Shown: one piece after another, positions 1 to 64,000 of the stretch
Layout: every line of letters starts with the position of its first letter
How positions within the stretch are numbered: position 1 is the stretch's first letter
Sequence record: PV654397.1
DNA: 64,000 nucleotides
Direction: 5' to 3' (one strand)
Made by a program: the position numbers and the translations under genes
Notes under the pieces: generated by a model
What the model saw: only the letters and a program-made list of their open reading frames with translations
What the model was told of the DNA's origin: nothing
Databases searched by the model: none

Positions 1-152
1 AGGTTACCCGCCCTTTAGCCCCCTACGCATTTTGCCATAGTCCAATCCCTTTTTATTCATAAAAGTCAAGGGATTACCTATGCATTTTTTTAACGCTGAA
101 GTTTAAAAATGCCTTGACTTTTTTATGATTCAGTACTAAATCCCTTTACGCA

Positions 153-362
153 TTAATCCTTCGTTACGCTTACGATTATCTGTGTATCCCCATAGTCCTG
201 CCATACTTCCACGCCAGCCGTCGCCCTGGTTAGTCGTGCTGTCATCTGCTTAATGGTCTTAGGCTTTAGTGGAACCTGTTGCAGTACTGTACGCATAGTA
301 TCATCGACGTTATCGTGTACGCCTGCAATAGTGCCTAGGACGCTGTATACTGTATAGAACAT
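153..362 (-). CDS. hypothetical early protein (69 aa)
   Basis: ORF with AGGAGG SD upstream; no recognisable motif. Confidence 0.75.
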   Translation of the reverse strand: MFYTVYSVLGTIAGVHDNVDDTMRTVLQQVPLKPKTIKQMTARLTRATAGVEVWQDYGDTQIIVSVTKD

Positions 363-430
363 ATGTATGCCCTCCTGATATAGTTAAGGCCGCTACAAGG
401 CGGCCTATGATGTTTGGTGATGTGTAACGC

Positions 431-832
431 TTACAGTCCTAAGATAGTGCGTGCTTCGTTACGTTCCGTGCACAGCTGCATGATGTGAGCAAGTAAGTCC
501 TTGCTAATGTATCCGGTGTTCATAGCTTCACGAATAGATACATCATAAGCACCGAACCCCGTGCGAACGATACGCACATCATTCAGGTTAGTATTATAGA
601 TACCGCCGAGATCAACGGCTTCGAATACTACATCAACAGAATATTCATTGTTGCCATCGTGGAAGTTTTCCAGTGCAATAGTATTGGATACCGCCCAACG
701 TTTGCAGTTTCCAATGATGCGGCACTGTTCCGGTTGGATAGTGCCATTACTTACAGCGTACTCCAGTGCATCTTTACCAAAAGTCCGAGCCAGTACTAAA
801 ACGTCAGCGAAGGAAGTGATTGAGAAGGTCAT
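431..832 (-). CDS. hypothetical early protein (MTFSITSF...)
   Basis: Start trimmed from 895 because the extra codons are the promoter and leader hairpin; AAGGAG precedes the ATG at 832. Confidence 0.75.
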   Translation of the reverse strand: MTFSITSFADVLVLARTFGKDALEYAVSNGTIQPEQCRIIGNCKRWAVSNTIALENFHDGNNEYSVDVVFEAVDLGGIYNTNLNDVRIVRTGFGAYDVSIREAMNTGYISKDLLAHIMQLCTERNEARTILGL

Positions 833-917
833 GATAAAACTCCTTAATTTAGGAGGGAGAACCATTTCCCCCTCTCTATGTAAAACATTATACATGAATC
901 TAAGTACTATGCAAGTA

Positions 918-1253
918 CTATTTCATTTTAATACCTGGATTCAGGTAACGGTGAGAGCCGTATTCTGGAGAGGTTTCGGTCCAGTACAGTAAATCGATAG
1001 TCCCTTTAGCGTTAATCTTATCTACCAGCTTATTCATCTTAGCGTATACTACATCAGCATCGATGCGTTTAAAGCCAGTAGCTTTAGTGAAGTAGTAATG
1101 ATTTACTTCGCTATCGTTAAGGATATACCGAGAACCGTCAGCCGTTTGTGCGACAATGAATGAGAATGATACTTTACGATCAAGGCCGTCGCAGTATACA
1201 GATGAATCATTGGTACGGATGAAAGCTTTAACGATATCGATTGAAGTACTCAT
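918..1253 (-). CDS. hypothetical early protein (111 aa)
   Basis: ORF with GGAG SD and upstream TTGACA promoter. Confidence 0.75.
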   Translation of the reverse strand: MSTSIDIVKAFIRTNDSSVYCDGLDRKVSFSFIVAQTADGSRYILNDSEVNHYYFTKATGFKRIDADVVYAKMNKLVDKINAKGTIDLLYWTETSPEYGSHRYLNPGIKMK

Positions 1254-1399
1254 GGTGAATCTCCTAACTTTGTGGGCCGTCGCACCGTTGCCGCCCTACG
1301 AGATACATTATTGCAGTACTGATATACTTTGTCAATACTTTTTTATTAATAGTTTTAGTTCCACCAGCAGATAGTTACTCACCGTTATTAACTATATAT

Positions 1400-1445
1400 T
1401 TTGGATACACCTATGCACCCTGTGGGCTAGTTTTTGTCTATGCGT
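1400..1445 (-). ncRNA. CCC-N3-GGGUGC motif RNA candidate, copy 1
   Basis: GCCCACAGGGTGC (1415-1427, reverse strand) 21 nt downstream of TTGACT-17-TATTAT; no ORF follows. Confidence 0.45.
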
Positions 1446-1447
1446 AT

Positions 1448-1487
1448 ATAATAGCAAAGGGACTGACCGGAGTCAATCCCTTTTTTT
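1448..1487 (-). promoter_or_regulatory. fused intrinsic terminator and sigma70 promoter
   Basis: Hairpin GGGATTGAC-TCCG-GTCAGTCCC-TTT whose left arm is a TTGACT -35, 17 bp before TATTAT. Confidence 0.7.
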
Positions 1488-1499
1488 ATTCTTTTTTTG

Positions 1500-1700
1500 T
1501 TAGATGATTCTCCAATCATCAACGATCATGGTAAGATACCGAACCAGTGATTCGAGTGATTCGTGTTCTCGATAGTCTGCCGCTCCACCAGCGGTACAAG
1601 TACAGCCGATTAAGCCGTTTTGTAGTTCCTGGATCTTTACGTCGATCTGGTTGGCTTTAGCTTCTTTCAGTACTTCAACCAGGGCGATAGCGATAGACAT
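1500..1700 (-). CDS. hypothetical early protein (66 aa)
   Basis: ORF with GGAG SD behind a leader hairpin. Confidence 0.75.
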   Translation of the reverse strand: MSIAIALVEVLKEAKANQIDVKIQELQNGLIGCTCTAGGAADYREHESLESLVRYLTMIVDDWRII

Positions 1701-1755
1701 AATGTTTTACTCCAAACTATTGGCGGGAGAACTATTCCCCCGCTCTATGTAAAAC

Positions 1756-1783
1756 ATTATACATTACTGGTTAGTACTGTCAA
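1756..1783 (-). promoter_or_regulatory. sigma70-type early promoter (representative of more than 25 similar cassettes in 1-20 kb)
   Basis: TTGACA-16-TATAAT followed by GTTTTACATAGAG and a GC-rich hairpin. Confidence 0.8.
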
Positions 1784-1790
1784 ATAGTTT

Positions 1791-2048
1791 TTATGAAATA
1801 TCTTCGATGTAGTCGGCCCATTTCATTTTTTCAGTACTGTCAATGGCTACCGGATTATTTGGATCAAACCATTCACCATCACCGCAATACATACCCACGG
1901 CTACGGTTTTATAGCCATCCTGGGCCGTACACCACGACATTGCACGATAGATATGGCCTTTAACTGGTTGCAGTACTGGTAACGTTTTATGGTCTTCTAC
2001 GTAGGCCATAGCTTGAGGATTTACCCGATATTGTGTGAACTGATCCAT
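1791..2048 (-). CDS. hypothetical early protein (85 aa)
   Basis: ORF with own TTGACA promoter and AGGGG SD. Confidence 0.7.
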   Translation of the reverse strand: MDQFTQYRVNPQAMAYVEDHKTLPVLQPVKGHIYRAMSWCTAQDGYKTVAVGMYCGDGEWFDPNNPVAIDSTEKMKWADYIEDIS

Positions 2049-2124
2049 TATGTTTCCCCTTGTAGTTAGTAAAGTTATTACATCAGTACTATCAAGCTAT
2101 GTCAATAGTACTGAAATAAAACTT

Positions 2125-2349
2125 TTAGATTAGATTATTGAGGCCGTCAATGGTAGACTCACTTTCTTCTTTCTCCCATTGTCGGTAGTACTTCCATGCT
2201 TCATGATAGGTGGCGATTAGTTCATCTTTTTGATCCTGGTTACATGCCAGTACTGAATCACGGTGAGCGGTGTTATAGATAGAATCGAATGATTTCTTCT
2301 CTTCTGCCAGGTTAGCTACTTCCCGCATCAGTTCATCAAAGTTAGCCAT
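2125..2349 (-). CDS. hypothetical early protein (74 aa)
   Basis: ORF with AAGGAG SD, promoter and leader hairpin. Confidence 0.75.
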   Translation of the reverse strand: MANFDELMREVANLAEEKKSFDSIYNTAHRDSVLACNQDQKDELIATYHEAWKYYRQWEKEESESTIDGLNNLI

Positions 2350-2416
2350 TTTATTACTCCTTTTAGTGGGGGAGGATATCTCCCCCTATGCAAAACATTA
2401 TACTTTGTTTTAGTTA

Positions 2417-2680
2417 TTATGCAAGTACTTTTTTCATATAAACATTAAATTCTACACCGCCGTAACCTTCCACGATGATATGTTTTGCGTTATCACGTTT
2501 GCACATAGTGAAACCGTTGTTGATATGTTCTGCATTTTCCAGGGCGACATCACCGATAGCGGCACATACGGCACTAATAACAGTATTCCGCAAAGTACTG
2601 GTATCATTGGCGGTCATAGTAGTTTGCAGTACTACGTTGTCGTATACGTGTGCATTGATAGTGATTTCGATAGTGTTCAT
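2417..2680 (-). CDS. hypothetical early protein (MNTIEITI...)
   Basis: Start trimmed from 2734; AGGAG SD precedes ATG at 2680. Confidence 0.75.
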   Translation of the reverse strand: MNTIEITINAHVYDNVVLQTTMTANDTSTLRNTVISAVCAAIGDVALENAEHINNGFTMCKRDNAKHIIVEGYGGVEFNVYMKKVLA

Positions 2681-2767
2681 GGTGTATCTCCTGGACTTGA
2701 GGGGAAACCATTTCCCCCTCTCGATATAAAACATTATACGTTAATCTAACTACAATGCAAGTACTTT

Positions 2768-2959
2768 TTAAATTTTATTTCCGATATAGTCCGGTCTATT
2801 CTTTTCGGTCATACGCTTTGCTAATGTCTGCATATGGCTTATAGCGTTCAAGGTGTCTTCCTCCAGGGATGAATCAAGATAATCAGGATCATTCTTCACC
2901 TTGCAATGATTATGATATCGTAGTACTGCCAGTACTTTTTTAACTTCTTCTACTGTCAT
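2768..2959 (-). CDS. hypothetical early protein (63 aa)
   Basis: Start overlaps stop of the upstream gene (translational coupling). Confidence 0.65.
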   Translation of the reverse strand: MTVEEVKKVLAVLRYHNHCKVKNDPDYLDSSLEEDTLNAISHMQTLAKRMTEKNRPDYIGNKI

Positions 2960-3228
2960 AATAAGTACCCCACTTCGTTAGCTTTCAGGTTAGTATCAAT
3001 CATCAGTGGATTTTTGTAGTTCACAAAACGATTAGTTTTTTCGATAGCAAATCCCATATAATCCAGCTTACTAACAGTACATTCATTCTTAAAAACTTCT
3101 TTCGCTGCATCGATTGCTGATTGCATGGATAACCGACCATCTAAATTAATGTTTCCAAATGATCCACCAGCAGAAGTAGGATTACCGTTCATATCTTTAA
3201 TGATCATAGTAGCGGAGTAGCTAGACAT
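2956..3228 (-). CDS. hypothetical early protein (90 aa)
   Basis: ORF with AAGGA SD, promoter and leader hairpin. Confidence 0.75.
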   Translation of the reverse strand: MSSYSATMIIKDMNGNPTSAGGSFGNINLDGRLSMQSAIDAAKEVFKNECTVSKLDYMGFAIEKTNRFVNYKNPLMIDTNLKANEVGYLL

Positions 3229-3281
3229 AATTTTGTTTCCTTTTAGTATCGGGGAGAACTATTCTCCCCTTGATGTAAACT

Positions 3282-3309
3282 ATTATACAGTACTGGTATA
3301 CTTTGTCAA
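3282..3309 (-). promoter_or_regulatory. sigma70-type early promoter with AGTACT 9 bp after the -35
   Basis: TTGACA aagtatacc AGTACT g TATAAT. Confidence 0.8.
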
Positions 3310-3312
3310 TAC

Positions 3313-3534
3313 TTAATTACGGTTAAAATGATATGTGCCTTTATCATCCTGTACGCCCCATACTGATTTACCATCAACACCAGTGAAGCCGGATTGTAAT
3401 TCAATATGGAAACCATTATTATCAACTACAAAAACTTTTTTATTTTCATCCCGATAACATTGATATTCTGAATCAACATTAAAGGCCGCATCATTCAGTA
3501 GATTGGAAGCGTAAATGCAAGTCATTGTAGTCAT
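3313..3534 (-). CDS. hypothetical early protein (73 aa)
   Basis: ORF with AAGGA SD, promoter and leader hairpin. Confidence 0.7.
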   Translation of the reverse strand: MTTMTCIYASNLLNDAAFNVDSEYQCYRDENKKVFVVDNNGFHIELQSGFTGVDGKSVWGVQDDKGTYHFNRN

Positions 3535-3654
3535 GATTTTATTCCTTATTGCCAGGGAGAACCGTTCCCCCTCTCGATATAAAACATTATACTTGATTCT
3601 AAGTACAATGCAAGTACTTTTTAAAAAATAGTTTTCAGTACTGAATACTTATAT

Positions 3655-3705
3655 AATAGATACACTTCCGCACCCTATGGGTCAGTGAGTTATCTCTCAA
3701 TGGAT
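3655..3705 (-). ncRNA. CCC-N3-GGGUGC motif RNA candidate, copy 2
   Basis: TGAG-AGATAA-CTCA hairpin then ACCCATAGGGTGC...GTGTATCT behind a fused terminator/promoter (3708-3746). Confidence 0.5.
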
Positions 3706-3754
3706 ATATAATAGCAAAGGGACTGACCGGAGTCAATCCCTTTTTTAATCTTTT

Positions 3755-4339
3755 TTATCGTGTTACCTTACTTGCTGCCACATCACGCTTTTTATAGTAC
3801 TGATTCCAGATATTGCTGGTTAAACCGTAATCAAGTACTTTAATAAGTCCATTACGATCCTGGCCGATATTCTGTTTTCTGATATCTCTTATCGTTAGTG
3901 TTGATAATGTATCATCAACGTGTTGTAGTGCATCAGCAAAGCGGTGCTGGCGTTCGATTGCATTACGTTTAATATTGTACTTTAATTCATTGCACGCGTT
4001 TACGTGCTTCACACTGCCTTTGCTTGCAGTACTCAACCGATCCATAACGATAAACATATTATCAGGATCGCATAAATGCATATGCACCTTTGCAAAGTAC
4101 TGTTTCAACTGAGGGCGGTCATAGTCTAAAAAATTCCATACCTTACATTCAGTTTCATTTTGTTCTACACCCGCATCACAATTCGCGACCTTAATCACTA
4201 ACCGATCATTTAAAGCGAATACTATACGGGAAGAACCAGCACCGATGATCTCCAGGCCAGCTAACCGACAAGCTGAAAGGATCTCTTTGTTGGTTTCCAT
4301 TTCTGACAGTGTACGGATGAATTTAGTATAATTACGCAT
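3755..4339 (-). CDS. Ser/Thr protein kinase-like protein (T7 gp0.7-type single kinase domain)
   Basis: Gly loop IGAGSSRIVF, LVIKVA Lys, NETE alphaC Glu, catalytic RDIRKQN, DYG (DFG equivalent); start trimmed to MRNYTKF after AAGGAG. Confidence 0.8.
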   Translation of the reverse strand: MRNYTKFIRTLSEMETNKEILSACRLAGLEIIGAGSSRIVFALNDRLVIKVANCDAGVEQNETECKVWNFLDYDRPQLKQYFAKVHMHLCDPDNMFIVMDRLSTASKGSVKHVNACNELKYNIKRNAIERQHRFADALQHVDDTLSTLTIRDIRKQNIGQDRNGLIKVLDYGLTSNIWNQYYKKRDVAASKVTR

Positions 4340-4370
4340 TGCATGTTCTCCTTGAGTTAATGAAACTATA

Positions 4371-4613
4371 TTACAGTACTTTACTATCAATGGCAACTAC
4401 TTTTTTAACATTAACGGCGTGGATCACTTCCTTCGTGTTTTTAGTACTGAATACTTTCGCCGCTCCTTGTTCGACCGTGATACGATAGCGACCATTAACA
4501 TCAACCATATTAATAAAGTCCGGCGTGCTGAATGGTGTTGTTTTACATTTGAGTACTGTTAACAGTTCCACCAGCGATGTAGTTTCTTTGATACGTTTTT
4601 CTAAAGTAATCAT
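4371..4613 (-). CDS. hypothetical early protein (MITLEKRI...)
   Basis: Start trimmed; preceded by a 57-bp promoter cassette near-identical to that at 4890-4946. Confidence 0.7.
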   Translation of the reverse strand: MITLEKRIKETTSLVELLTVLKCKTTPFSTPDFINMVDVNGRYRITVEQGAAKVFSTKNTKEVIHAVNVKKVVAIDSKVL

Positions 4614-4670
4614 TTTGTTTCCCCCGTGTTGGTATGTACATATAGTACTAAAACATTTGAGTACTGTCAA

Positions 4671-4889
4671 TTAGATAATATTATATTTCTTAAAATAAAA
4701 TGCGTCTTGTGTTGGTTGATACTCGATACCGTTACCGTTATTGACTTCAACTAATAAACCTTTGTCAATTAGTTTTTTAATAGTACGATACCCTTGTTGA
4801 AAATTGGTAAAATGTGAATCATTACGAAAGGTATAACCGTGCTTAACTGCTTCATCAATAGTTTTCTTTTCGATTTTAGATAATTTCAT
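4671..4889 (-). CDS. small hypothetical protein, possibly winged-helix-like (MKLSKIEK...)
   Basis: Start trimmed; TIKKLIDKGLLVEV resembles a wHTH recognition helix and wing (weak). Confidence 0.65.
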   Translation of the reverse strand: MKLSKIEKKTIDEAVKHGYTFRNDSHFTNFQQGYRTIKKLIDKGLLVEVNNGNGIEYQPTQDAFYFKKYNII

Positions 4890-4942
4890 TTTGTTTCTCC
4901 CGTGTTGGTATGTGTACATAGTACTAAAACAATTGAGTACTG

Positions 4943-5197
4943 TCAACGTGATATTAGTTTTATTTTCTTATTGTATTGTTGATGCTCATAAAGGTTTATC
5001 TTTCCTGTGTTCTCGATTACTATCCTGTTGTTAGTGTCCACGTCGATTACACGCAGTTTCCCGTTGCTTAACTTCCTAGGTAATAGGTTACCATTAATAA
5101 ACTCATTAGCAAGCTGTACGGCCTTTGTGATGATTCTCTGAGGTGCTTTATAGTGTACCCGTAAGATGTTATCTTTATATAGTTGAACCTTAATCAT
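4943..5197 (-). CDS. hypothetical early protein (84 aa)
   Basis: ORF with AGGA SD. Confidence 0.65.
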   Translation of the reverse strand: MIKVQLYKDNILRVHYKAPQRIITKAVQLANEFINGNLLPRKLSNGKLRVIDVDTNNRIVIENTGKINLYEHQQYNKKIKLISR

Positions 5198-5258
5198 TTT
5201 GTTTGTCCTATAAAAAAGGCGGGAACTGATCCCGCCGTGTTGTTAGTACTGCAAGTTA

Positions 5259-5654
5259 TTAGATAACCTGGCGGCGTTTACTGTATACTGTTACACGATT
5301 ACCCTTACGATCATGTCGGATCTCTTTCTGGTTGCGAATCAGTTCACTTGGACGCTTAAGGTTTGCCAGGTGATCCGCGTGAGTCCATGCGGTGTGGTTT
5401 ACCTGTACTTTGATATCAGAATCAGCGATAAACTCATCTTGTGCGTCAAGTATTGCCGCCAGCATATCCGCTCGTTTTAGTTCTGCTGCTGTCAGTACTG
5501 GCTCAGGTGAATTCACAATATCAGAGATTTCTTTGAACTGTACGGCCCAGCGTTGACCTTTCGGTGCTGTCGTTCCCATGTCTTTAAATGCTGCTCCTTC
5601 CTCGCGTGCAACAATACGGGCAGCTTCACGGGTAGCGTAGAATTTAGTAATCAT
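5259..5654 (-). CDS. early protein, paralog of 18945-19211
   Basis: Shared ATRE.ARI.AR..GA.FKDMG...G.RWA and DRKGNRVTVY segments. Confidence 0.75.
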   Translation of the reverse strand: MITKFYATREAARIVAREEGAAFKDMGTTAPKGQRWAVQFKEISDIVNSPEPVLTAAELKRADMLAAILDAQDEFIADSDIKVQVNHTAWTHADHLANLKRPSELIRNQKEIRHDRKGNRVTVYSKRRQVI

Positions 5655-5749
5655 GGTATACATCCTATTAGTTAAGTTAGTACTACAAGTTAGAGTCTAT
5701 TATAAAGTACTATCTGGGCAATGTCAAATAGTACTTTAAATGGATTCTA

Positions 5750-6073
5750 TTACATGTCTTTCTTACGTTTTACATCGTGGTAGCGAACTGTTATTTCTTT
5801 GTTGATCTCTTCCTCGATGCGGTGAATAACTTTTTCTTTCGGGTTGAAACCTATTACAGTTTCCTTAATGATTTCTAAACCCGTGTACTCGCCTTGTGTG
5901 CCGTAACCGTATGTAAAGGTTTCGTGTCCCAGGTCTTCCCAGCGATCACCAATCAATGCGGACACGTAGCAGGAGTGGTAAGTATTGCCGTGGCTATCAG
6001 TCCACCGATTAACTTTAATGTCAAAGGAGGTTACAATTTTCAGTTCTACTTTCTGGGTAAGGATCATAGCCAT
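5750..6073 (-). CDS. early protein, paralog of 12949-13272
   Basis: Shared RWTDS.GNTYHSC, FTYGY and VKRKKD segments. Confidence 0.8.
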   Translation of the reverse strand: MAMILTQKVELKIVTSFDIKVNRWTDSHGNTYHSCYVSALIGDRWEDLGHETFTYGYGTQGEYTGLEIIKETVIGFNPKEKVIHRIEEEINKEITVRYHDVKRKKDM

Positions 6074-6160
6074 TTTTATTTCTCTCTCTTTGTTAGGAGG
6101 GGAACCATTCCCCTCGCTTGATGTAAACTATTATACAGTACTAAGATACTTTGTCAATAC

Positions 6161-6343
6161 TTATTTTTTGGAAAGTTTACGCATTAATTCTACGCTTTCT
6201 TGTGAACGTTTTGCTACTTGACAAGCTGCATGGGCAGTAAACATTTTTGTATAGTCTGACGCTTTGCCACCGAACCGAGCGGCACGTTCACGGGCACTTG
6301 GAACTAATACGATTTCTTTCTTACAGATAGTGCACTTAGCCAT
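6161..6343 (-). CDS. small basic protein with CxxC...HxxC (possible Zn ribbon)
   Basis: Start trimmed to MAKCTICKK; ends AHAAC. Confidence 0.7.
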   Translation of the reverse strand: MAKCTICKKEIVLVPSARERAARFGGKASDYTKMFTAHAACQVAKRSQESVELMRKLSKK

Positions 6344-6431
6344 TTTAATTTCTCTCTCTTTGTTAGGAGGGGAACCGTTTCCCCTCACTTGATGTAAACT
6401 ATTATACAGTACTAAGATACTTTGTCAATAC

Positions 6432-6707
6432 TTAAGTATTGTAAATGTCGTGAATAGTGATAAAGTTTTTACGACCGTAAACATGTAAATCAGTATCAAT
6501 GTAGTGCTTATCAAGTACATCCTCGACGCTTAAAGACGTGTCGTGAATATCTTCATAAAATTGTGGATCAACAATCGTGCTTAAGTCATCTGGCGTTAAC
6601 TTATCGTTAAGACATTGAACCGCCTGGATATCTGCTTCACGTTTCCATTGTTCCAGATTAGTAGTCAGTACTTGCTCGATTTCGTTAGCTGTAAGTAAAG
6701 TCCGCAT
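6432..6707 (-). CDS. acidic hypothetical early protein (91 aa)
   Basis: ORF with AAGGA SD and own promoter. Confidence 0.7.
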   Translation of the reverse strand: MRTLLTANEIEQVLTTNLEQWKREADIQAVQCLNDKLTPDDLSTIVDPQFYEDIHDTSLSVEDVLDKHYIDTDLHVYGRKNFITIHDIYNT

Positions 6708-6771
6708 TTTAATGTTTCCTTATCAGTGGTTGATGTAAGTATTATACTCGTTTAATTTCTATTGTCAAACT

Positions 6772-6856
6772 ATTTTATCAGGGGAGTTTTTCGTATGTCT
6801 TACTCCTGGACTACTTAACGGGGTTACTTATTTCGTTCCCCGTCCTGATGTAAAAC
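6772..6856 (-). ncRNA. two-hairpin RNA candidate with AAG-N4-ACGAAAA loop, copy A
   Basis: Behind TTGCAT/TATAAT promoter; no start codon; near-identical copy at 18262-18346. Confidence 0.55.
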
Positions 6857-6937
6857 ATTATACTTGATTCTAAGTACAATGCAAGTACTTTTTTAAAAAT
6901 AGTTTTCAGTACTTGATAGTACTAGCCACCAGCAAAC

Positions 6938-6985
6938 AATAGATACATTTATGCACCCTGTGGGCTGATTTGTTTCTATGCGTAT
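6938..6985 (-). ncRNA. CCC-N3-GGGUGC motif RNA candidate, copy 3
   Basis: GCCCACAGGGTGC...ATGTATCT behind a fused terminator/promoter (6986-7023). Confidence 0.45.
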
Positions 6986-7032
6986 ATAATAGCAAAGGGA
7001 CTGACCGGAGTCAATCCCTTTTTCAAATATTT

Positions 7033-7182
7033 TTAAACTTCTTTCGGGTTGCGATATGTGATAGCGTTCGGGTACATTTGTTTAATGTTATTCCATGCCT
7101 GGTTAACATTATAACCACTTGATCGAATCAGTTGGTTATTACCGACACCTTGAAACACTACTTCAAATAAGAATTCTTTCAT
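7033..7182 (-). CDS. small hypothetical protein (49 aa, MKEFLFEV...; not in ORF track)
   Basis: ATGA overlap with upstream gene and GAGGTG SD; ends just before a terminator. Confidence 0.65.
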   Translation of the reverse strand: MKEFLFEVVFQGVGNNQLIRSSGYNVNQAWNNIKQMYPNAITYRNPKEV

Positions 7183-7352
7183 GCTTTCACCTCTCGATCT
7201 GCTTTGCCTTTACGCCAGGCTGTTGCTAATTGTTCGCGTTGCCATAAGTCGAGTGATACGTAAAGTTTTGCATTATCACCCTTCGGATATTCGCCAGTAG
7301 TACCAATCCGATAAAACAGATCTTTCAGTACTGTTAATTCTACCTGGACCAT
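7179..7352 (-). CDS. small hypothetical protein (MVQVELTV...)
   Basis: Start trimmed from 7454; GAGGA SD and leader hairpin. Confidence 0.7.
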   Translation of the reverse strand: MVQVELTVLKDLFYRIGTTGEYPKGDNAKLYVSLDLWQREQLATAWRKGKADREVKA

Positions 7353-7438
7353 TATACTTTCCTCTTTGTTCGGAGGGGAACTATTCCCCTTCCGATATAA
7401 AACATTATACACTTTATTCAGTACTGTGCAAGTACTTT

Positions 7439-7651
7439 TTAATCTTTCAGCCAATGATCCTGAATGAATTTTTCACCGGAACCTTGCTGCATTGATTGTA
7501 ACAGACGTTCGCGATGAGCGGCGGCGAATTGCTCAGTACTATGCGTTACACCTGGTTGATATCTGGATTCACCATTTGGGGCGATGTATTGTACATCCCA
7601 CGGTTTTTCGTTAGTATCAGACCATTTACGAACGATTAGTTGACCTTGCAT
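7439..7651 (-). CDS. hypothetical early protein (70 aa)
   Basis: GAGGA SD, promoter and leader hairpin. Confidence 0.75.
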   Translation of the reverse strand: MQGQLIVRKWSDTNEKPWDVQYIAPNGESRYQPGVTHSTEQFAAAHRERLLQSMQQGSGEKFIQDHWLKD

Positions 7652-7724
7652 TTTTCTTTCCTCTTAGTGGGGAGAATCATTTCTCCCCTTCATGTAAACT
7701 ATTATACAGTACTGGATTGCATTG

Positions 7725-8021
7725 TCAATATTTTATTACTTCTTCGTATAATTTATCTAGTACTTCGTATATTTCATTTAATGCACTTGATTTAAAAGCT
7801 GATAAGCTATACCCTTCATCTTTTAAAAATTTAATAAATTCAGTTGATGACGTGAATCCGATCGTTTCATGTGGGAATGAAAAATCAAACGTTCCTTGCA
7901 TTACGCATTTAAATTCATCAGGTGAAAACGTGTTACCTTTTTCCCGTCGCATAGTGAAAAATGTAACACCTGGAATAAACTTAAGCTGTTCCCGTGATTC
8001 AACTTCAATAACTGTTTTCAT
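7725..8021 (-). CDS. hypothetical early protein (98 aa)
   Basis: GAGGT SD, promoter and leader hairpin. Confidence 0.75.
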   Translation of the reverse strand: MKTVIEVESREQLKFIPGVTFFTMRREKGNTFSPDEFKCVMQGTFDFSFPHETIGFTSSTEFIKFLKDEGYSLSAFKSSALNEIYEVLDKLYEEVIKY

Positions 8022-8104
8022 ATATTACCTCTTAGTGGGGAGAATCATTTCTCCCCTTCATGTAAACTATTATACAGTACTATAATCTATTGTCAAATAC
8101 TTTT

Positions 8105-8293
8105 TTACAGTTTATGAATTAATTCTTTATCTAAGCGATAGCGTACATTATTAATGGTAACAGCATTATTTTTAATGCTACGCTGTACGGGTCCACCAGC
8201 AATAACAAACGTTGCTTTATTGCCCCGAACAATGATAGCACTTCCAGGATTACCGAAATCATCTTGTACTAAAATACTTGATAAGTTTTCCAT
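8105..8293 (-). CDS. hypothetical early protein (62 aa)
   Basis: GAGGA SD, promoter and leader hairpin. Confidence 0.7.
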   Translation of the reverse strand: MENLSSILVQDDFGNPGSAIIVRGNKATFVIAGGPVQRSIKNNAVTINNVRYRLDKELIHKL

Positions 8294-8373
8294 TTTTTTA
8301 TTTCCTCTTAGTAGGGGAAGATGTTTCCCCTTGATGCAAGTACTATAACAGTACTGAAAACTAAATGCAAGTA

Positions 8374-8730
8374 CTATGATAAAATCATGATAGGATATTC
8401 ACTATCTATCAATACCTCGAATCCGAAACCTTCGTACCATTCTTTAAGATTAAAGGCGTTATCTTCTCCCGTATCGCATTCTAAGATGATACAATCTGAA
8501 TCATCTGCGGCATCAATAAAGGCATTCATTAATTCGTTACCTTCACCATTGCCCCGACTATCAGGATCAACATAAAGAGAATCAATAAACGCTACACGGT
8601 CATAATCAAGATCCGGTGCAATGATTCCACGTTTAACAAACCAGTACTGCAATTGTGCTACTTTGCCCTGTACCTGATAACCAGTGATCTCGCCATTGTC
8701 AGTAGTACGCGTGATATGTTGTATTCCCAT
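8374..8730 (-). CDS. GNAT-family N-acetyltransferase
   Basis: Motif A IDSLYVDPDSRGNGEGNELM and motif B WYEGFGF. Confidence 0.85.
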   Translation of the reverse strand: MGIQHITRTTDNGEITGYQVQGKVAQLQYWFVKRGIIAPDLDYDRVAFIDSLYVDPDSRGNGEGNELMNAFIDAADDSDCIILECDTGEDNAFNLKEWYEGFGFEVLIDSEYPIMILS

Positions 8731-8793
8731 GATTACTATCCTCAGTTAAGATATAAAACATTATACACTATCTTTCAGTACTGTCAATACTTT

Positions 8794-9051
8794 TTATCTC
8801 ATAGATCTATGCCAACAATTACGCGGATCTCTTTTAAAAGTACTATCATGATCCTCCTGGCAAGTAATACAATACATGCACCCTATAACGGCCTGGCGTC
8901 GATTCTCAGGGATTTTATCGCCGCAGTCGAGGCAATGTACTAGTGATTCTCTTTGTGCGTTAATTTGCTTTCTAGCGTGGTTAACGGCTGCCTGAATCAC
9001 TGCATGAATCTCGTCTTGTTCGGCCCCGTCTTTCGCGTATCCTACTGCCAT
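8794..9051 (-). CDS. DksA/TraR-family C4 zinc-finger protein (YbiI-like)
   Basis: CLDCGDKIPENRRQAVIGCMYCITCQ matches CxxC-x17-CxxC with IPxxR; N-terminal MAVGYAKDGAEQDEI resembles the TraR/YbiI acidic tip. Confidence 0.85.
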   Translation of the reverse strand: MAVGYAKDGAEQDEIHAVIQAAVNHARKQINAQRESLVHCLDCGDKIPENRRQAVIGCMYCITCQEDHDSTFKRDPRNCWHRSMR

Positions 9052-9294
9052 TATTTTAACCTCATTATAAAAATACTATAGTACTGTAATGCTACAATAA
9101 TACTACTAGTGCTAATCTTATTCAAACCACATGATACTACATATCCCCCAGCATTACCACGGATAGTAACGCCTTCGTATTGTCTATATAAATTCAACTG
9201 CGTTTATTGCCTTTGATCAAGAATTGATCAGAATTATACGCCTTATGCTAAATTGATCCAGTACTTTTTTTGATCATTTATTGATCGATATTAT

Positions 9295-9348
9295 ATAGTT
9301 ACATTTGTGCACCCTATGGGTTAGTGACGTTCTCGTCTTGATGTAAGT
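9295..9348 (-). ncRNA. CCC-N3-GGGUGC motif RNA candidate, copy 4
   Basis: GACG-AGAA-CGTC hairpin then ACCCATAGGGTGC behind TTGACA-17-CATAAT (9349-9377); no ORF. Confidence 0.5.
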
Positions 9349-9381
9349 ATTATGCCAGTACTGGAGGATATTGTCAATAGA

Positions 9382-9579
9382 TTATTTTAATTTTTTTCTG
9401 TCATTGATTAATGCTTTCAGTACTATACTAATAACTTGCAATGATTCATCAATGACAATGAAATTATTCTCTTTCATTAGATGATAGTTACCATTGATTG
9501 TATATTCTAACGAGTACTGTTTACGTTTAATTTTTGATAATGTTTCTATTTGTTTTTGTACTGATTTCATGCTAATCAT
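9382..9579 (-). CDS. hypothetical protein
   Basis: ORF; AGGA SD 9 nt before ATG at 9579; start uncertain. Confidence 0.45.
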   Translation of the reverse strand: MISMKSVQKQIETLSKIKRKQYSLEYTINGNYHLMKENNFIVIDESLQVISIVLKALINDRKKLK

Positions 9580-9684
9580 TGTCAAACGTCCTGTAACGCA
9601 TTCTAACGAGATAAACGGTTTAGTACTGGCATTGTATAGGGTAAATGATTAAAGCCCACCAGCGTTAACCAGTGGGCTATAATA

Positions 9685-9828
9685 TTACATCTTGCGGATA
9701 ATCTTAACAGTATCTTTCACCGATTTACCGTTTTGCTGACATTGCTCGATCATCGCGTATTGTTCTGCGGTCAGATCCTCGCCAGTTTTTGCCAGTACTG
9801 CGTCGATGAATGAATCCAGTGCGATCAT
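9685..9828 (-). CDS. small protein (47 aa, MIALDSFI...; not in ORF track), paralog of 13888-14040
   Basis: GAGAG SD and own promoter; shared LD.F...V...E...I..C...GK....T..II.K pattern. Confidence 0.7.
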   Translation of the reverse strand: MIALDSFIDAVLAKTGEDLTAEQYAMIEQCQQNGKSVKDTVKIIRKM

Positions 9829-9918
9829 TTTGTTTCTCTCTTAGGTTAAGTTAACTACTGTTTATAAAACTTATTATACAGTACTATCAAACGTTGTCAA
9901 TAGTACTGGTAATATATT

Positions 9919-10098
9919 TTAGCGGTAGTCGTCGTATGCTTTATTCACCTGGCGAATATAACTTTCAAAGGCTTCGTCTACCGTTTCATACTCCCGAACA
10001 TAATCACCATATGAAACTACATACATACCTTTTTGATCTTCAAACGTCATGATGATAGAATCCAGACCAACGATTTCAGTTTTTGCGATGATAGCCAT
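9919..10098 (-). CDS. small hypothetical protein (59 aa, MAIIAKTE...; not in ORF track)
   Basis: AAGGA SD and own TTGACA promoter. Confidence 0.7.
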   Translation of the reverse strand: MAIIAKTEIVGLDSIIMTFEDQKGMYVVSYGDYVREYETVDEAFESYIRQVNKAYDDYR

Positions 10099-10180
10099 TT
10101 TTAATTCCTTAATAGTGTAGTTGATAAAAGTTATTATGTCAGTACTATCAAACTATGTCAATAGTACTGTGATAATATTT

Positions 10181-10393
10181 TTAGTTAATGATAGTCAGTG
10201 TAAAATTGTAATCACCTGCCTGGTATAGTACTTTGTCGCCGAACGTTCCAACACGTTTCATATTGCAATAGATACCCATAACACTTTTTACATCTTTGAT
10301 ATTCCGAACGCCAGTAATATCCTTGTTTAAATGATCGTGATCAGAAAATAAAACTTGTTTTGCATTTTTCAGTACAGTGCAGATATTAGCCAT
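10181..10393 (-). CDS. hypothetical early protein (70 aa)
   Basis: SD, promoter and leader hairpin. Confidence 0.7.
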   Translation of the reverse strand: MANICTVLKNAKQVLFSDHDHLNKDITGVRNIKDVKSVMGIYCNMKRVGTFGDKVLYQAGDYNFTLTIIN

Positions 10394-10488
10394 TTTGTTT
10401 TCTCTCTGTTAGTGGGGAGAATCATTTTCTCCCCTTGATGTAACTTATTATACAGTACTATAATCTATTGTCAAACTATTTTTTTATA

Positions 10489-10830
10489 TTATTCGAAATC
10501 TTCTGGACCGGACTGATAATCATCTTCACCGTATGCACTTTCTAACCGCTCGCCAGTGTGATCATCAGTTAGTGAGTCATCCTCATAGTTCACGTCTACG
10601 CCAGTGATGTAAAACTGGCTATCGTCTGGATCATTGAAATTAATTTTTTGGATGTTTACAATAACTGTATTGATACCCAGGACACCGCCATCAGCCGTTA
10701 CAAAGTACTGATAGTTTTCGCAACCGCCTGAATTGAAACCGTAATTAATTTCGGCCCGACCATCATTTAAACGCAGTGCCTGAGCGATGATTTCATTTTC
10801 AAAGTTAGATTGAGCAATTGAGATAGTCAT
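10489..10830 (-). CDS. acidic hypothetical early protein (113 aa)
   Basis: AAGGA SD, promoter and hairpin; D/E-rich C-terminus. Confidence 0.75.
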   Translation of the reverse strand: MTISIAQSNFENEIIAQALRLNDGRAEINYGFNSGGCENYQYFVTADGGVLGINTVIVNIQKINFNDPDDSQFYITGVDVNYEDDSLTDDHTGERLESAYGEDDYQSGPEDFE

Positions 10831-10949
10831 GATTCGTTTCCTTATTACCAGGGGAAACCGTTTCCCCTTTCGATGTAAAACATTATACGCTTATTGAGAT
10901 AGTTTGCAAGTACTTTTTAAAAATAGTTTTCAGTACTCAAACATTATAT

Positions 10950-11000
10950 AATAGATACACTTATGCACCCTGTGGGCTAGTGAGCTATCTCTCAATGAAT
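10950..11000 (-). ncRNA. CCC-N3-GGGUGC motif RNA candidate, copy 5
   Basis: TGAG-AGATAG-CTCA hairpin then GCCCACAGGGTGC...GTGTATCT behind a fused terminator/promoter (11003-11042). Confidence 0.5.
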
Positions 11001-11040
11001 ATATAATAGCAAAATGGCTGACCGGAGTCAACCACTTTTT

Positions 11041-11184
11041 TCATTTATTTTTAGCTTTTAGAATCGCCGCCTTTCGCGTCATGCCTTGCTTGATGTATTC
11101 CTGTACTTTCGCTTTACGTGCATTCGCTTTATTTGCTTTCGTAAACGCCGAACAACTTTTATAGTTTAAACCTGTTGGATTCAT
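11041..11184 (-). CDS. small basic protein (47 aa, MNPTGLNY...; not in ORF track)
   Basis: GGTG SD; Lys/Ala-rich; ends at a terminator. Confidence 0.55.
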   Translation of the reverse strand: MNPTGLNYKSCSAFTKANKANARKAKVQEYIKQGMTRKAAILKAKNK

Positions 11185-11270
11185 TTAAATCACCATAAAG
11201 AATAGATAGGTTACTAACAACGCCGCGATCAATGCACCGACCAGGGCCGAACTATAGTAAGCTAATGTTT

Positions 11271-11423
11271 TCATTTTTTAGCCTGAAAGTAATGTTTAAT
11301 TTGTGCGGCGGTCAGTGCACAATTACGCAGGAAGTTTTCTGTATAACTTTTGCGAGTACTGAAAGAGAATTGACCTTTGCCGTTGCCGATAGTAACATCA
11401 AACCGAGCGTTGTATTGTTTCAT
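11271..11423 (-). CDS. small hypothetical protein (MKQYNARF...)
   Basis: Start trimmed; AGGAG SD and leader hairpin. Confidence 0.55.
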   Translation of the reverse strand: MKQYNARFDVTIGNGKGQFSFSTRKSYTENFLRNCALTAAQIKHYFQAKK

Positions 11424-11509
11424 TTTGTTTCTCCTGTTATTGGGGAGAATCATTTCTCCCCTCTATGTAAAACATTATACGCGTTTAAAAACTAATTGCA
11501 AGTATTATT

Positions 11510-11761
11510 TTAAACGTTGTATTTTAAACTTTGTGCGACTAATTTCGCACGGTCAATCATATTCTGCCATTTTTGGATCTCTTCTGGTAGAAAACGATAT
11601 TCACCAATTACAATAGTGATACACTGGTCAGCCTTGTCGATGTATGTGGTATCAATCTCTACTTGAACGGGTACACGTTCGCCGTACTCAGTCCCTGGGA
11701 TAATGCAATCATTATCATAAGTTACAGTAGTAGCAGTGTCTTTGATTAAAATTGTTTCCAT
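11510..11761 (-). CDS. hypothetical early protein (83 aa)
   Basis: GAGGA SD, promoter and hairpin. Confidence 0.75.
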   Translation of the reverse strand: METILIKDTATTVTYDNDCIIPGTEYGERVPVQVEIDTTYIDKADQCITIVIGEYRFLPEEIQKWQNMIDRAKLVAQSLKYNV

Positions 11762-11843
11762 TATACTTTCCTCGTTAGGTGTAAGGGGAACGTTTTCCCC
11801 TTCATGTAAACTATTATACAGTACTAAAAACTAATTGCAAGTA

Positions 11844-11990: not shown

Positions 11991-12059
11991 TTCATATTCC
12001 TTAATTAGTGGGGAGAATCATTTCTCCCCTTCATGTAAAACATTATACGCGTTTAAAAA

Positions 12060-12269: not shown

Positions 12270-12274
12270 ATTAA

Positions 12275-51860: not shown

Positions 51861-51928
51861 TAATTAAAAACTCCAATTTAGTACTTTAATTTCTATAAAA
51901 TAATTATAGCAAAAAGGGCTGACCGAAG

Positions 51929-61890: not shown

Positions 61891-62115
61891 TCATTTTTTA
61901 GTCACTTTACAATTTGAATCTTTTTTGTACTGAACAATCACATTGTTCTTAAGGAAGATGATGGTCCCATAGGAACCTTGGGCTGCAACTTCAACAATAT
62001 GGTTCTTATATGTTTCAGTGTACCCTTCCATCTCGTTGACACACACTACATGATACTTTGGTTTAGCACATACAACAGTACTCAAGAATAGCAGTACTAG
62101 TACTAGATATTTCAT
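61891..62115 (-). CDS. small secreted or lipoprotein-like protein
   Basis: Signal peptide ending VVCA; Cys pair. Confidence 0.65.
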   Translation of the reverse strand: MKYLVLVLLFLSTVVCAKPKYHVVCVNEMEGYTETYKNHIVEVAAQGSYGTIIFLKNNVIVQYKKDSNCKVTKK

Positions 62116-62165
62116 TTTATTACCTTATAAACAAGAACAGGAATCCTTTTACGGATTCCTATAAT

Positions 62166-62459
62166 TTAGTCCTTTAATGTACCATTGTGTAAACGATTAT
62201 ACACATCATTGCGACGCAATTCAACAATATCTTCAGCGTACTTCATTGTAAACGCCCATGCTTGTGGATGCACATTAAGCTTCATACGAATGCGATTCTT
62301 CATCAATTCACCGCTTAGGCGAACAAACTCATGAACACCACGACTTCCGTACTCTGAAATCAAATCATTGATGTACATGTTGCGAAGGGTTTCGTCTGTA
62401 CATTCTTTGACCATTTCTACGTCTGCCACGATGCTTGCATTTACTGAAGTACTGATCAT
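62166..62459 (-). CDS. hypothetical protein (97 aa)
   Basis: AAGGT SD. Confidence 0.7.
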   Translation of the reverse strand: MISTSVNASIVADVEMVKECTDETLRNMYINDLISEYGSRGVHEFVRLSGELMKNRIRMKLNVHPQAWAFTMKYAEDIVELRRNDVYNRLHNGTLKD

Positions 62460-62470
62460 TTTAAGTTACC

Positions 62471-62737
62471 TTATTTGAATTGGACTGTAATTTTATCACC
62501 TTCAACTACGAACTTACAGTCGTAGCGACGGGCCATATCCATATACATATGCTCAGAATACCACGGAACATCAATAACTGGATGCTCTGCGTATTGTAGC
62601 ACTTCACGGTCACCAACAGTAGTGATGACGAAAGGAATGTTCATCTCTCGCAAAAACAACTCAGCACCTGGTGAACGATTGACAAACTCAGTGTCGTTAC
62701 GCAAAGTAAAACCATTGTATTGTAATTTAAGCTTCAT
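62471..62737 (-). CDS. hypothetical protein (88 aa)
   Basis: GAGGA SD. Confidence 0.7.
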   Translation of the reverse strand: MKLKLQYNGFTLRNDTEFVNRSPGAELFLREMNIPFVITTVGDREVLQYAEHPVIDVPWYSEHMYMDMARRYDCKFVVEGDKITVQFK

Positions 62738-62751
62738 GATTATCCTCTAAG

Positions 62752-63096
62752 TTAATACCATTCTTTTAAACCATCAAGTTCGGCTATGTGAGTAATTATA
62801 ACACAGATAACACTCAGGTCAAGCATTATTTGCTCATAATTTAATTTTATTCTATCATCATTGTATGCTCGAAAAACAACATCAAAGTCAAAGTAGTTAT
62901 CGTTTTCATCATTCATTGGAATGATTCTATATCTACGTCTACCATCATCATTGAATACAGTCAAACACTGTTTGAATTTCTTCATTAACTGTGTAGTCAA
63001 TGCATTGTAATATGCAACATCATATTGTGTACAACGTGGGTCATTGGGTAGATAAAACGATACAAATTTTTTTAATTCTATTTGAGTCTTATCCAT
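62752..63096 (-). CDS. hypothetical protein (MDKTQIEL...)
   Basis: Start trimmed; coupled to the upstream gene. Confidence 0.65.
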   Translation of the reverse strand: MDKTQIELKKFVSFYLPNDPRCTQYDVAYYNALTTQLMKKFKQCLTVFNDDGRRRYRIIPMNDENDNYFDFDVVFRAYNDDRIKLNYEQIMLDLSVICVIITHIAELDGLKEWY

Positions 63097-63529
63097 ATAC
63101 AGCCTCATGTATTACTCTTTTACTTTGGCGGTACTCATCCTTTGCTTCTCTCACTGACATGATACGAACCAGATTGGCACTACCACAATAGTACTGAACC
63201 TGACTACGACCAATGTCAACATGATTATCAGGAACTTCATATACTGATACAGCAAACCCTGCACGATGTAATTTACCCAAGTCCATAGTAAAGAACTTAA
63301 ACAAATCATTCAAACTCTGACAGCCAAATGCCCAGCCACGTTTGATTGAATAGATTCCATCTTCAGTTGGTTCTGGTTGGAATTGCGAAGGCGTGGTCAT
63401 GCACAAACGGTCAAATCCATTTTTAGTACTGTATCGTGAAGAGTACCGTGCGAACGGCCCTACTGTTTTTGCTGGATCTAAGTTAGGTTCAATATAACTG
63501 AATTTAAGTTCAAAACGATATACGTACAT
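63089..63529 (-). CDS. conserved-type phage hypothetical protein (146 aa)
   Basis: GP...PEP.ED...FGC.S....F......GF.V.VYEV...V..G.SQV pattern; own promoter cassette. Confidence 0.7.
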   Translation of the reverse strand: MYVYRFELKFSYIEPNLDPAKTVGPFARYSSRYSTKNGFDRLCMTTPSQFQPEPTEDGIYSIKRGWAFGCQSLNDLFKFFTMDLGKLHRAGFAVSVYEVPDNHVDIGRSQVQYYCGSANLVRIMSVREAKDEYRQSKRVIHEAVYG

Positions 63530-63584
63530 AATTAAAATCCCCAGTAGTTGATGAAATAATTATAACAAAAAAGGTTGACCGAAG

Positions 63585-63776
63585 TCAACCTTTATTTTGA
63601 AGTTCTTGAACTAATTGTCGTACTTCTTGGATGTCACGACACTGCTTTACAGTGAAGTAATCATACTTACGACCATAGGTTCTTGGATCATCACCTTCCA
63701 TATACTGCTGCACATCAAAGATTTGTAAGTATGGATGCTGCATAACACGAATGTTATCACATTGATAAATCAACAT
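63585..63776 (-). CDS. hypothetical protein (MLIYQCDN...)
   Basis: Start trimmed; GAGGA SD. Confidence 0.65.
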   Translation of the reverse strand: MLIYQCDNIRVMQHPYLQIFDVQQYMEGDDPRTYGRKYDYFTVKQCRDIQEVRQLVQELQNKG

Positions 63777-63780
63777 ATGT

Positions 63781-63981
63781 TTAGTCCTCATATTTACACA
63801 AGCCACCGAATGTTGCCTGTTTTGCTGCCTTACGCATCATCACAAGTTTAACATACTGTTCGCCATTACTTTCTTCATATACATCAACTTGAAGAAATGC
63901 AAGCATATTGGGATCAGTATCATTCGAGTACTGCGTAAAACTAATGTCACCTACAGTATGTTCTTTAACAAAATTATACAC
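63781..63981 (-). CDS. hypothetical protein (66 aa)
   Basis: GGTG SD. Confidence 0.65.
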   Translation of the reverse strand: MYNFVKEHTVGDISFTQYSNDTDPNMLAFLQVDVYEESNGEQYVKLVMMRKAAKQATFGGLCKYED

Positions 63982-64000
63982 TTCACCATCGATATAAACG

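Follow-up and report, generated by a model that had tools for sequence, protein, structure and literature searches.

Layout of the analyzed region

We analyzed a 64,000-bp stretch of DNA (the window), bases 1-64000 of Escherichia phage WPEC5 (PV654397.1, 381,326 bp, linear; 100% identity match), for its most abundant hexamer, the palindrome AGTACT. WPEC5 is a RaK2-like jumbo phage, and its close relatives are the Asteriusvirus jumbo myophages 121Q, PBECO4, G17, and BF17. Genome-wide counts were made on the 359,664-bp unique genome, in which one copy of the direct terminal repeat (DTR) is kept. The features of the window that frame the distribution of the site, including its open reading frames (ORFs), are as follows.

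1..21662, no strand: left DTR, 21,662 bp, identical to record bases 359,665-381,326
1..64000, no strand: AGTACT field, 273 sites, 4.3 per kb, consensus H-AGTACT-D
21965..26565, minus strand: ~24 small, tightly packed, co-oriented ORFs (59-70 aa) adjoining the DTR, with AGTACT inside the genes at 6.5 per kb
26672..44893, plus strand: sixteen tandem RCC1-like genes of ~380 aa each (annotation, Pfam)

The DTR was the zone densest in AGTACT, with ~138 sites; its ORFs had 4.0 per kb and its spacers 9.8. It is crowded with short ORFs, each with a sigma70-type promoter upstream and with a G+C-rich stem-loop (GGGGA...TCCCC) that separates the -10 box from the ribosome-binding site. In phage fEgEco12, which is 98% identical to WPEC5, a DTR of 20,993 bp has been established by PhageTerm and restriction digests; ten ordinary enzymes, a set that did not include ScaI, digested its virion DNA in line with prediction (PMC13070987). 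The group of small ORFs at 21965-26565 looks like a tandem paralogue array, and a comparable array lies at 352-359.6 kb beside the right repeat. An RCC1-like beta-propeller domain was matched by 14 of the 16 tandem genes at 26672-44893, with a best E-value of 8e-31. AGTACT density reached its lowest level of the window in this array and was still enriched there: 1.35 sites per 4 kb were expected, and 4 to 15 were counted.

Abundance and exactness of the word

AGTACT was the commonest hexamer in the window, with 273 copies against 21.6 expected from base composition (12.6-fold). In dinucleotide-preserving shuffles (n = 100), it occurred 22.07 ± 4.73 times with a maximum of 34, and the Markov expectations were 48 (order 2) and 105 (order 3). 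It was also the top-ranked hexamer of the unique genome (984 copies against 121 expected, 8.1-fold), and each 10-kb bin of that genome was enriched, by 2.6- to 21-fold. A first-pass annotation, made from the sequence of the window alone, had counted 11 copies in bases 1-2000 and proposed that the enrichment extends through the genome. The count is exact, where composition predicts ~0.7 per 2 kb, and the bins bear out the proposal. Among the other 6-bp palindromes in the window, none exceeded 3.2-fold and 23 of 64 were absent.

The excess belonged to the exact word. Words one mismatch away from AGTACT stood at only 0.4- to 2.2-fold, with 1.4- to 2.2-fold for changes at the outer positions (NGTACT/AGTACN) and 0.4- to 1.7-fold for changes at the inner ones; the core GTAC was enriched 2.3-fold. 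Sequence information was confined to the hexamer and one base per side, with no further flank signal. At position -1, C accounted for 47% and G for 7% of sites (background G, 18%), and position +1 mirrored this pattern with G preferred. Accordingly extended, CAGTACTG occurred 61 times in the window against 0.7 expected and 215 times genome-wide against 3.8 expected (57-fold), and TTCAGTACTGAA occurred in 8 copies in the window. The left and right flanks did not covary, as expected of two independent half-sites, and CAGTAC (606) was about as frequent as GTACTG (621) although one strand holds most genes. The trinucleotides ACT (1.07-fold) and AGT (1.18-fold) were near expectation in the genome.

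These properties left little room for a larger element. A longer repeat or a REP/MITE-like mobile element was ruled out by the lack of information in the flanks and by the intragenic position of two-thirds of the window sites (182/273). A hairpin, cruciform, or terminator stem was likewise ruled out, as extension of the arms beyond the hexamer equaled the flank-shuffled expectation. The terminator stems described in the first-pass annotation were thus not upheld: their palindromic arms are no longer than independent flank preferences predict. These results indicate that AGTACT is read on duplex DNA as an exact, two-fold symmetric word of 6-8 bp, with CAGTACTG as the best form, and that the codon, the peptide, the hairpin, or a larger repeat is not the level at which it is read.

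A known symmetric reader of a related site is SlmA, the nucleoid-occlusion factor of the host. Its E. coli binding site, GTGAGTACTCAC, is centered on the same hexamer and is dispersed in the chromosome as the target of a symmetric dimer (PMC3020112), and the hosts of the AGTACT-enriched phage clade are all Enterobacterales. Hijacking of SlmA by the phage, either to block division or to sequester the protein, could be imagined on these grounds. However, SlmA requires G1, T2, A4, G5, and a purine at position 3 (PMC3020112), and these flanks are absent in the phage: GTRAGYRCTYAC had no match in the phage genome, its half-sites occurred 20 and 12 times against 26 expected, and the G adjacent to the hexamer is disfavored (7% of sites against a background of 18%). 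The sites were ruled out as SlmA sites, given that no full match (GT-R-AG-Y/R-CT-Y-AC) exists in the phage genome, and we consider hijacking of SlmA very improbable.

Sites in coding DNA

By location, 182 window sites lay inside annotated genes and 88 outside. The genic sites fell in all three frames, each enriched over synonymous shuffling (AGT-ACT, 78; nnA-GTA-CTn, 63; nAG-TAC-Tnn, 40; 181 in total), so that the spread through intergenic DNA and every gene frame reported in the first-pass annotation was reproduced. Against these 181 sites, shuffling of synonymous codons gave 57.7 ± 6.0 and shuffling of codon order gave 27.8 ± 5.2. The enrichment therefore did not disappear when codons were controlled for, the outcome by which the first-pass annotation would have been refuted. 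The same analysis was extended to the 38 ORFs of at least 400 aa genome-wide, which include large conserved replication and structural genes; they contained 204 AGTACT against 56 ± 6 after synonymous shuffling. In these long ORFs, 125 of 237 Ser-Thr dipeptides (53%) were spelt AGT-ACT, where codon usage predicts 41, and 62 of 86 Val-Leu pairs following an A-ending codon read A-GTA-CTn.

An excess without function, arising from codon, dipeptide, or paralogue composition, would find some footing here, since in long ORFs AGT encodes 34% of Ser residues and ACT encodes 51% of Thr residues, and the tandem paralogue arrays inflate some counts. However, the excess survived both the synonymous and the codon-order shuffles with z above 20, and it was present in the 38 long ORFs as well as in spacers. 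The two shuffles rule out an artefact of codons, dipeptides, or paralogues.

Density, spacing, and conservation of sites

Outside the terminal zone, ORFs had an AGTACT density of 2.1-2.5 sites per kb and spacers one of 1.5-3.3, and across ORF length classes the density ranged just from 2.3 to 3.3 per kb. Only the DTR and the adjacent 6 kb were denser (ORFs, 4.0-6.5 per kb; spacers, 9.8 per kb). A role of the dense DTR in protecting the ends was not needed as an explanation, because promoter-bearing spacers and short ORFs account for the density. Spacing was Poisson-like (variance-to-mean ratio of site counts, 1.03 at 1 kb and 1.0 to 1.5 over 1-5 kb), and no regular spacing was found at this scale.

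We compared the retention of sites with that of other hexamers among relatives. AGTACT was retained at 101 of 111 sites in BF17 (91% against 79%, z ~3.2), 93 of 99 in G17 (94% against 79%, z ~3.7), and 84 of 97 in 121Q (87% against 60%, z ~5.3), and the better retention was seen in ORFs and spacers alike. Within the genus, the loss of AGTACT was ~three times slower than that of other hexamers. Between genera (~73% nucleotide identity, capsid region), 21-43% of sites were common against 20-22% for other hexamers, a weak excess, and each genome kept 35-45 AGTACT per 21 kb despite the turnover of positions. Polarized counts of gain and loss from four genomes comprised too few events, several of which were whole-module swaps. 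Above-control conservation of the cyanobacterial palindrome HIP1 (GCGATCGC) was taken by Xu et al. as an argument for selection (PMC5861425), and the argument applies likewise to AGTACT, given its above-control retention. These results indicate that selection holds the density near one site per 400 bp chromosome-wide while individual positions drift.

Clade limits, absence of GCGC, and host composition

The enrichment was confined to one lineage. In the enterobacterial RaK2-like clade, all 10 loci compared were enriched in AGTACT (3.2- to 6.7-fold) and all lacked GCGC, for which 11-28 copies were expected in each. Where the capsid protein was at least 85-92% identical, as in Yersinia phage fHe-Yen9-04, the loci stood at 3.2- to 6.5-fold, and RaK2 at 6.7-fold. 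A capsid relative at 72% identity was enriched 2.4-fold, and relatives at 64-69% were not enriched. None of the 18 more distant capsid relatives had either feature in full, and GCGC was present in all 18.

In WPEC5 itself, GCGC was absent from the window (68 expected) and from the genome (356 expected). Phages normally avoid restriction targets, and the contrast with such avoidance that the first-pass annotation had drawn is real, as the missing GCGC illustrates. The composition of the host was the inverse: 100 kb of E. coli K-12 contained 8 AGTACT where 22.8 were expected, and 748 GCGC where 442 were expected. Per kb, AGTACT amounted to 2.7 to 6.4 sites in the phages and ~0.08 in E. coli (two 50-kb samples), and host GCGC to 7.5. 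The clade-wide coupling of AGTACT and GCGC, together with the inverse composition of the host, suggests a discrimination between phage and host DNA.

The absence of GCGC also offers a second route to an excess without function, in which AGTACT would be a product of CpG decay or of the GCGC purge (G-CG-C to G-TA-C). The mild rise of GTGC (1.56-fold) and GCAC (1.36-fold) fits such decay. However, TGTACA, which is the corresponding decay product with the alternative flank, reached only 1.7-fold and the intermediates AGTGCT/AGCACT 1.5- to 1.8-fold, against 8.1-fold for AGTACT, and 356 missing GCGC are too few to supply 860 extra AGTACT. A by-product of the GCGC/CpG purge was ruled out, as the purge would not favor the A/T flank specifically. 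By either route, we regard an origin without function as scarcely credible.

A gene block free of ACT

The genome contained only one long gap in AGTACT, at 343,500-352,020, where ~7e-7 such gaps were expected. The gap coincided with a block outside the window (WPEC5 343,573-352,020) of ~24 co-oriented small genes, whose sense strand held no ACT over 8,447 bp against ~128 expected; the next-longest run in the genome was 475 bp. As a word-free run, this 8.4-kb block is the most extreme of the genome (expected number, ~1e-71). None of its 99 Thr codons was ACT, against 46.5% elsewhere, and ACT was also absent from both other frames, where 33 and 17.5 were expected. ACA, ACC, and ACG do occur in the block. 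The homologous block of 121Q was free of ACT for 7,511 bp at ~82% nucleotide identity to WPEC5, and one block protein was just 56% identical between the two phages; no homologues of one block protein were found outside the genus. A recent import was ruled out as the cause of the AGTACT-free gap, given that the block is kept across the genus and that the gap reflects a ban on ACT.

In this block, the base after AGTAC was A in 45 cases, C in 3, and G in 2. AGTACA thus occurred 45 times against ~2.8 expected (~16-fold), compared with ~2-fold elsewhere. We read this as persistence of the AGTACT pressure in the block, met there by the next-best word. The build-up of AGTACA argues for a function that is needed locally. 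A role that is purely global, as titration would be, is disfavored by it, and so is a repair drive aimed at the complete palindrome. The first-pass annotation had suggested, among other roles, that the site titrates a host nuclease; taken alone, this was a poor fit to the even density and to the compensation by AGTACA. The more general proposal of that annotation, positive maintenance of the site, was supported by the codon-aware excess, the slower loss within the genus, the even density, and the substitution by AGTACA where AGTACT is forbidden.

The ban on ACT suggests that transcripts of the block are immune to an ACU-specific endoribonuclease or to another single-strand reader. AGTACT as a whole might then act in RNA, with AGUACU or ACU as the target or decoy of an endoribonuclease or as a means of pairing transcripts; as a palindrome, it would be present in the RNA of either strand. 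The conserved 8.4-kb ACU-free sense strand does argue for single-strand reading of ACU, one enterobacterial MazF reportedly cleaves U^ACU and U^ACG (PMC10864209), and spacers inside long co-oriented gene arrays may be transcribed by read-through. However, ACT and AGT are not enriched as such, the word and its flanks are strictly two-fold symmetric down to the parity of CAGTAC and GTACTG, the flanks lack the covariation that would mark pairing, and the promoter copies are located before the point at which their own transcripts start. An RNA-level signal is therefore an improbable account of AGTACT.

Sites embedded in early promoters

In the DTR, the early promoters of sigma70 type hold AGTACT at two fixed places 20-22 bp apart, as AGTAC-TTGCA at -35 and as AGTACT-G-TATAAT at -10. 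Two modules show the layout.

11813..11845, minus strand: early sigma70-type promoter with two sites (11820 and 11840) 20 bp apart, read as AGTAC-TTGCAA, spacer, AGTACT-G-TATAAT
16421..16453, minus strand: second two-site promoter module of the same layout, with sites at 16428 and 16448

The window contained 19 pairs of sites 19-24 bp apart, 16 of them within the first 21.7 kb, and AGTACT showed a threefold peak 40-80 nt ahead of start codons. The words GCC/GCA-AGTACT are promoter -35 regions in reverse complement. Among the 984 sites genome-wide, promoter contexts were found as AGTACTTGCA (28) and as AGTACTG-N1-2-ATAAT (35). Roughly 60-80 of the 984 sites, under 10%, are built into early sigma70 promoters, and most sites have no promoter context.

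AGTACT could accordingly be an operator that binds a regulator of early transcription, with the intragenic copies being secondary, as a buffer or by chance spread. The two fixed places in the DTR promoters, the threefold upstream peak, and the 9.8 sites per kb in DTR spacers would all follow. However, the promoter contexts cover just ~28 + 35 of 984 sites, the 182 intragenic sites of the window are the majority, ORF density equals spacer density, and sites in ORFs are under synonymous selection. The promoter copies are mostly paralogous, moreover, and some strains lack AGTACT at the same promoter. We give this explanation little credence as an account of the whole field.

Search for a reader and the repair-drive alternative

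WPEC5 encodes two DNA methyltransferases, one C5 and one Dam-type (WPEC5 319,241-319,765). The C5 cytosine methyltransferase (WPEC5 100,609-101,469, minus strand, 286 aa) lies outside the window, and its best match among solved structures, over the full length, was the catalytic domain of DNMT3A/3B. Judged by this resemblance, it is probably a CpG methylase and not the AGTACT enzyme, and a DNMT3-like enzyme fits the CpG methylation reported for the related phage RaK2 (PMC3622015). As a reader of AGTACT, it was rejected: it is DNMT3-like, and its homologues occur in >60 AGTACT-depleted viral contigs (median, 0.15-fold). It was not found in Yersinia-type jumbo contigs. For the Dam-type methyltransferase, 121Q was the sole match in a pattern search, and by tblastn 52 records had a homologue at 60% identity or above, with more divergent homologues in many unrelated phages.

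A Pfam scan of ORFs of 60-450 aa yielded, among the matches listed, no ScaI-type, MutH, or Vsr enzyme, no third methyltransferase, no MazF/PemK toxin, and no classical (helix-turn-helix) repressor. It did yield homing-type nucleases (HNH, PDDEXK_5, and TnsA-like) and a T4-like replication and recombination set. The phage methyltransferase or DNA-binding protein for AGTACT that the first-pass annotation envisaged was not identified among these matches.

The chief rival to a self mark, the reading set out in the next section, is a repair drive coupled to a methyltransferase, as in the model of Elhai for HIP1. An orphan methyltransferase would mark GTAC or AGTACT, methyl-directed repair of the short-patch or mismatch type would turn near-cognates into the palindrome, and its abundance would be a by-product of the repair bias and not of a role of the sites. 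In cyanobacteria, each iterated palindrome co-occurs with its methyltransferase, and words that deviate by one base do so mostly at the outer positions (PMC4390886). The commonest one-base deviants of AGTACT were also at the outer positions, with GTAC at 2.3-fold, the phage encodes a Dam-type methyltransferase, and the slower loss of sites is compatible with a restoring process. However, the transition neighbors were undepleted (AGTATT/AATACT, 1.11-fold; AGCACT/AGTGCT, 1.67-fold), and depletion of neighboring words of the very short patch (VSP) type was not seen. Outside the terminal zone, spacers were no denser than long conserved genes, where a drive should favor weak constraint, and in the ACT-free block a drive would keep converting AGTACA, ~16-fold enriched there, to the banned form. 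The scan listed no Vsr or MutH-like gene, and the C5 methyltransferase, being DNMT3-like, points to CpG. On balance, the repair drive seems unlikely, while it retains a larger share of plausibility than any account in terms of RNA or of promoters.

AGTACT as a candidate self mark

We tentatively favor, at somewhat below an even chance, the reading that AGTACT is a lineage-specific, selected, iterated palindrome that serves as a locally required mark of self on the unmodified duplex DNA of the phage. A symmetric, phage-encoded reader would recognize AGTACT with the precision of an enzyme. The mark might keep phage DNA from the fate meant for host DNA, that is, nuclease attack or shut-off. Alternatively, it might recruit a phage function to AGTACT, and control of early promoters would be a further possible output.

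Several points weigh against this reading. The self mark and the nuclease-sparing output are both deduced from contrasts in composition alone, and the host density used for these contrasts comes from just 100 kb of one strain. No reader of AGTACT was among the Pfam matches listed, a weak absence given that most ORFs had no Pfam match. The slower loss of sites would equally follow from a restoring repair process. The promoter copies are largely paralogous modules and hence not independent events, and strains swap whole promoter modules, for example AGTACT for AAACGC at the same promoter. Finally, the high density of the DTR is owed to its spacers and short ORFs and does not count as evidence for end protection.

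In a broader and distinctly more speculative scheme, which we consider unlikely, the RaK2-like enterobacterial jumbo phages, whose DNA is not hypermodified, would tell self from host by composition through three coupled devices: the purge of GCGC, the saturation with AGTACT, and the ACU-free operon. GCGC, frequent in the host and purged from the phage, would be the entry point of a phage nuclease. AGTACT, rare in the host, would have to recur at intervals of ~400 bp as a "spare me" signal or as a recruitment mark. Transcripts of the ACU-free operon would survive an ACU-specific RNase that destroys other messages.

Comparison with known dispersed words

AGTACT resembles HIP1 in behavior, not in family membership. 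Like HIP1, it is a short palindrome and the most over-represented word of its genome (PMC5861425, PMC4390886). Both are dispersed in spacers and in all frames of genes, conserved above control among relatives, and lineage-specific, and their densities are comparable at about one site per few hundred bp. The HIP1 analogy of the first-pass annotation is therefore apt as a description. By contrast, AGTACT is AT-rich and 6-8 bp long, its carrier is a lytic virus and not a cell, no cognate methyltransferase is assigned to it, its spacing is Poisson-like at 1-5 kb without detectable periodicity, and it coexists with extreme avoidance of other palindromes.

The ScaI/Eco255I-type restriction target is the identical word, and the sharpness of the AGTACT excess is enzyme-like (8-fold for the exact word against at most 2.2-fold at one mismatch). 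However, the phage saturates AGTACT while avoiding 23 other 6-bp palindromes in the window, and the Pfam matches listed for ORFs of 60-450 aa included no matching nuclease or methyltransferase.

Full-text searches on AGTACT in phages, jumbo phages, and the RaK2 group yielded no account of the enrichment, and it goes unmentioned in the genome papers on CBB, RaK2, Sharanji, and fEgEco12. AGTACT thus extends the HIP-like kind of palindrome to another word and to a virus, in which it goes together with the absolute avoidance of other palindromes. No explanation has emerged in thirty years for HIP1-type palindromes, whose carriers are slow to manipulate, and one is now seen in a lytic coliphage that can be grown on laboratory E. 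coli and has about a thousand sites. Sister clades are without the trait, and the ACT-free block with its near-cognate substitute serves as a natural internal control. The question of what reads an iterated palindrome, and why everywhere, thereby becomes directly testable. The case also shows that one phage can shun restriction-type palindromes absolutely and yet select one to saturation, and it is relevant to self-labeling by phages whose DNA is unmodified.

As a functional analogy only, AGTACT is also comparable to Chi (GCTGGTGG), a frequent word of self that separates resident from foreign DNA and is needed locally. Chi is asymmetric and orientation-dependent and is read on single-stranded DNA by RecBCD; AGTACT, unlike Chi, is palindromic and has no known nuclease partner. 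Two observations alone hint at a Chi-like attenuation of a nuclease, namely the contrast in composition to the host and the local need for sites. E. coli Chi was itself enriched ~16-fold in the WPEC5 genome (37 copies against 2.3 expected). In the window, CCACCAGC on the plus strand was found at 1361, 1585, 3164, 4568, 6926, 8193, 9656, 14179, and 21066, and GCTGGTGG at 14241 and 21078. Nine Chi of the same orientation are thus clustered in the 21.7-kb DTR, and RecBCD would meet them face-on if it entered from the left end.

Other features of the window

The longest stretch of the window without AGTACT contains two genes.

49903..51880, no strand: longest AGTACT-free stretch of the window, 1,977 bp, 30% G+C, with a DUF4379 gene and an "endonuclease" gene

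The DUF4379 gene encodes a zinc finger, and the "endonuclease" had weak Pfam matches only. This stretch may represent a mobile insertion. A module that combines a terminator with a promoter, AAAGGGTTGACTTCGGTCAGCCCTTTTTGCTATAAT, was located on the minus strand at window positions 50022-50066 and 51907-51943, and distant phages shared pieces of it of 33-46 nt at 91-100% identity (Vibrio, Aeromonas phage 65, and Yersinia fHe-Yen9-03). In the Pfam scan, one ORF within WPEC5 1-75.5 kb matched a ParE-like toxin domain with an E-value of 6e-11.

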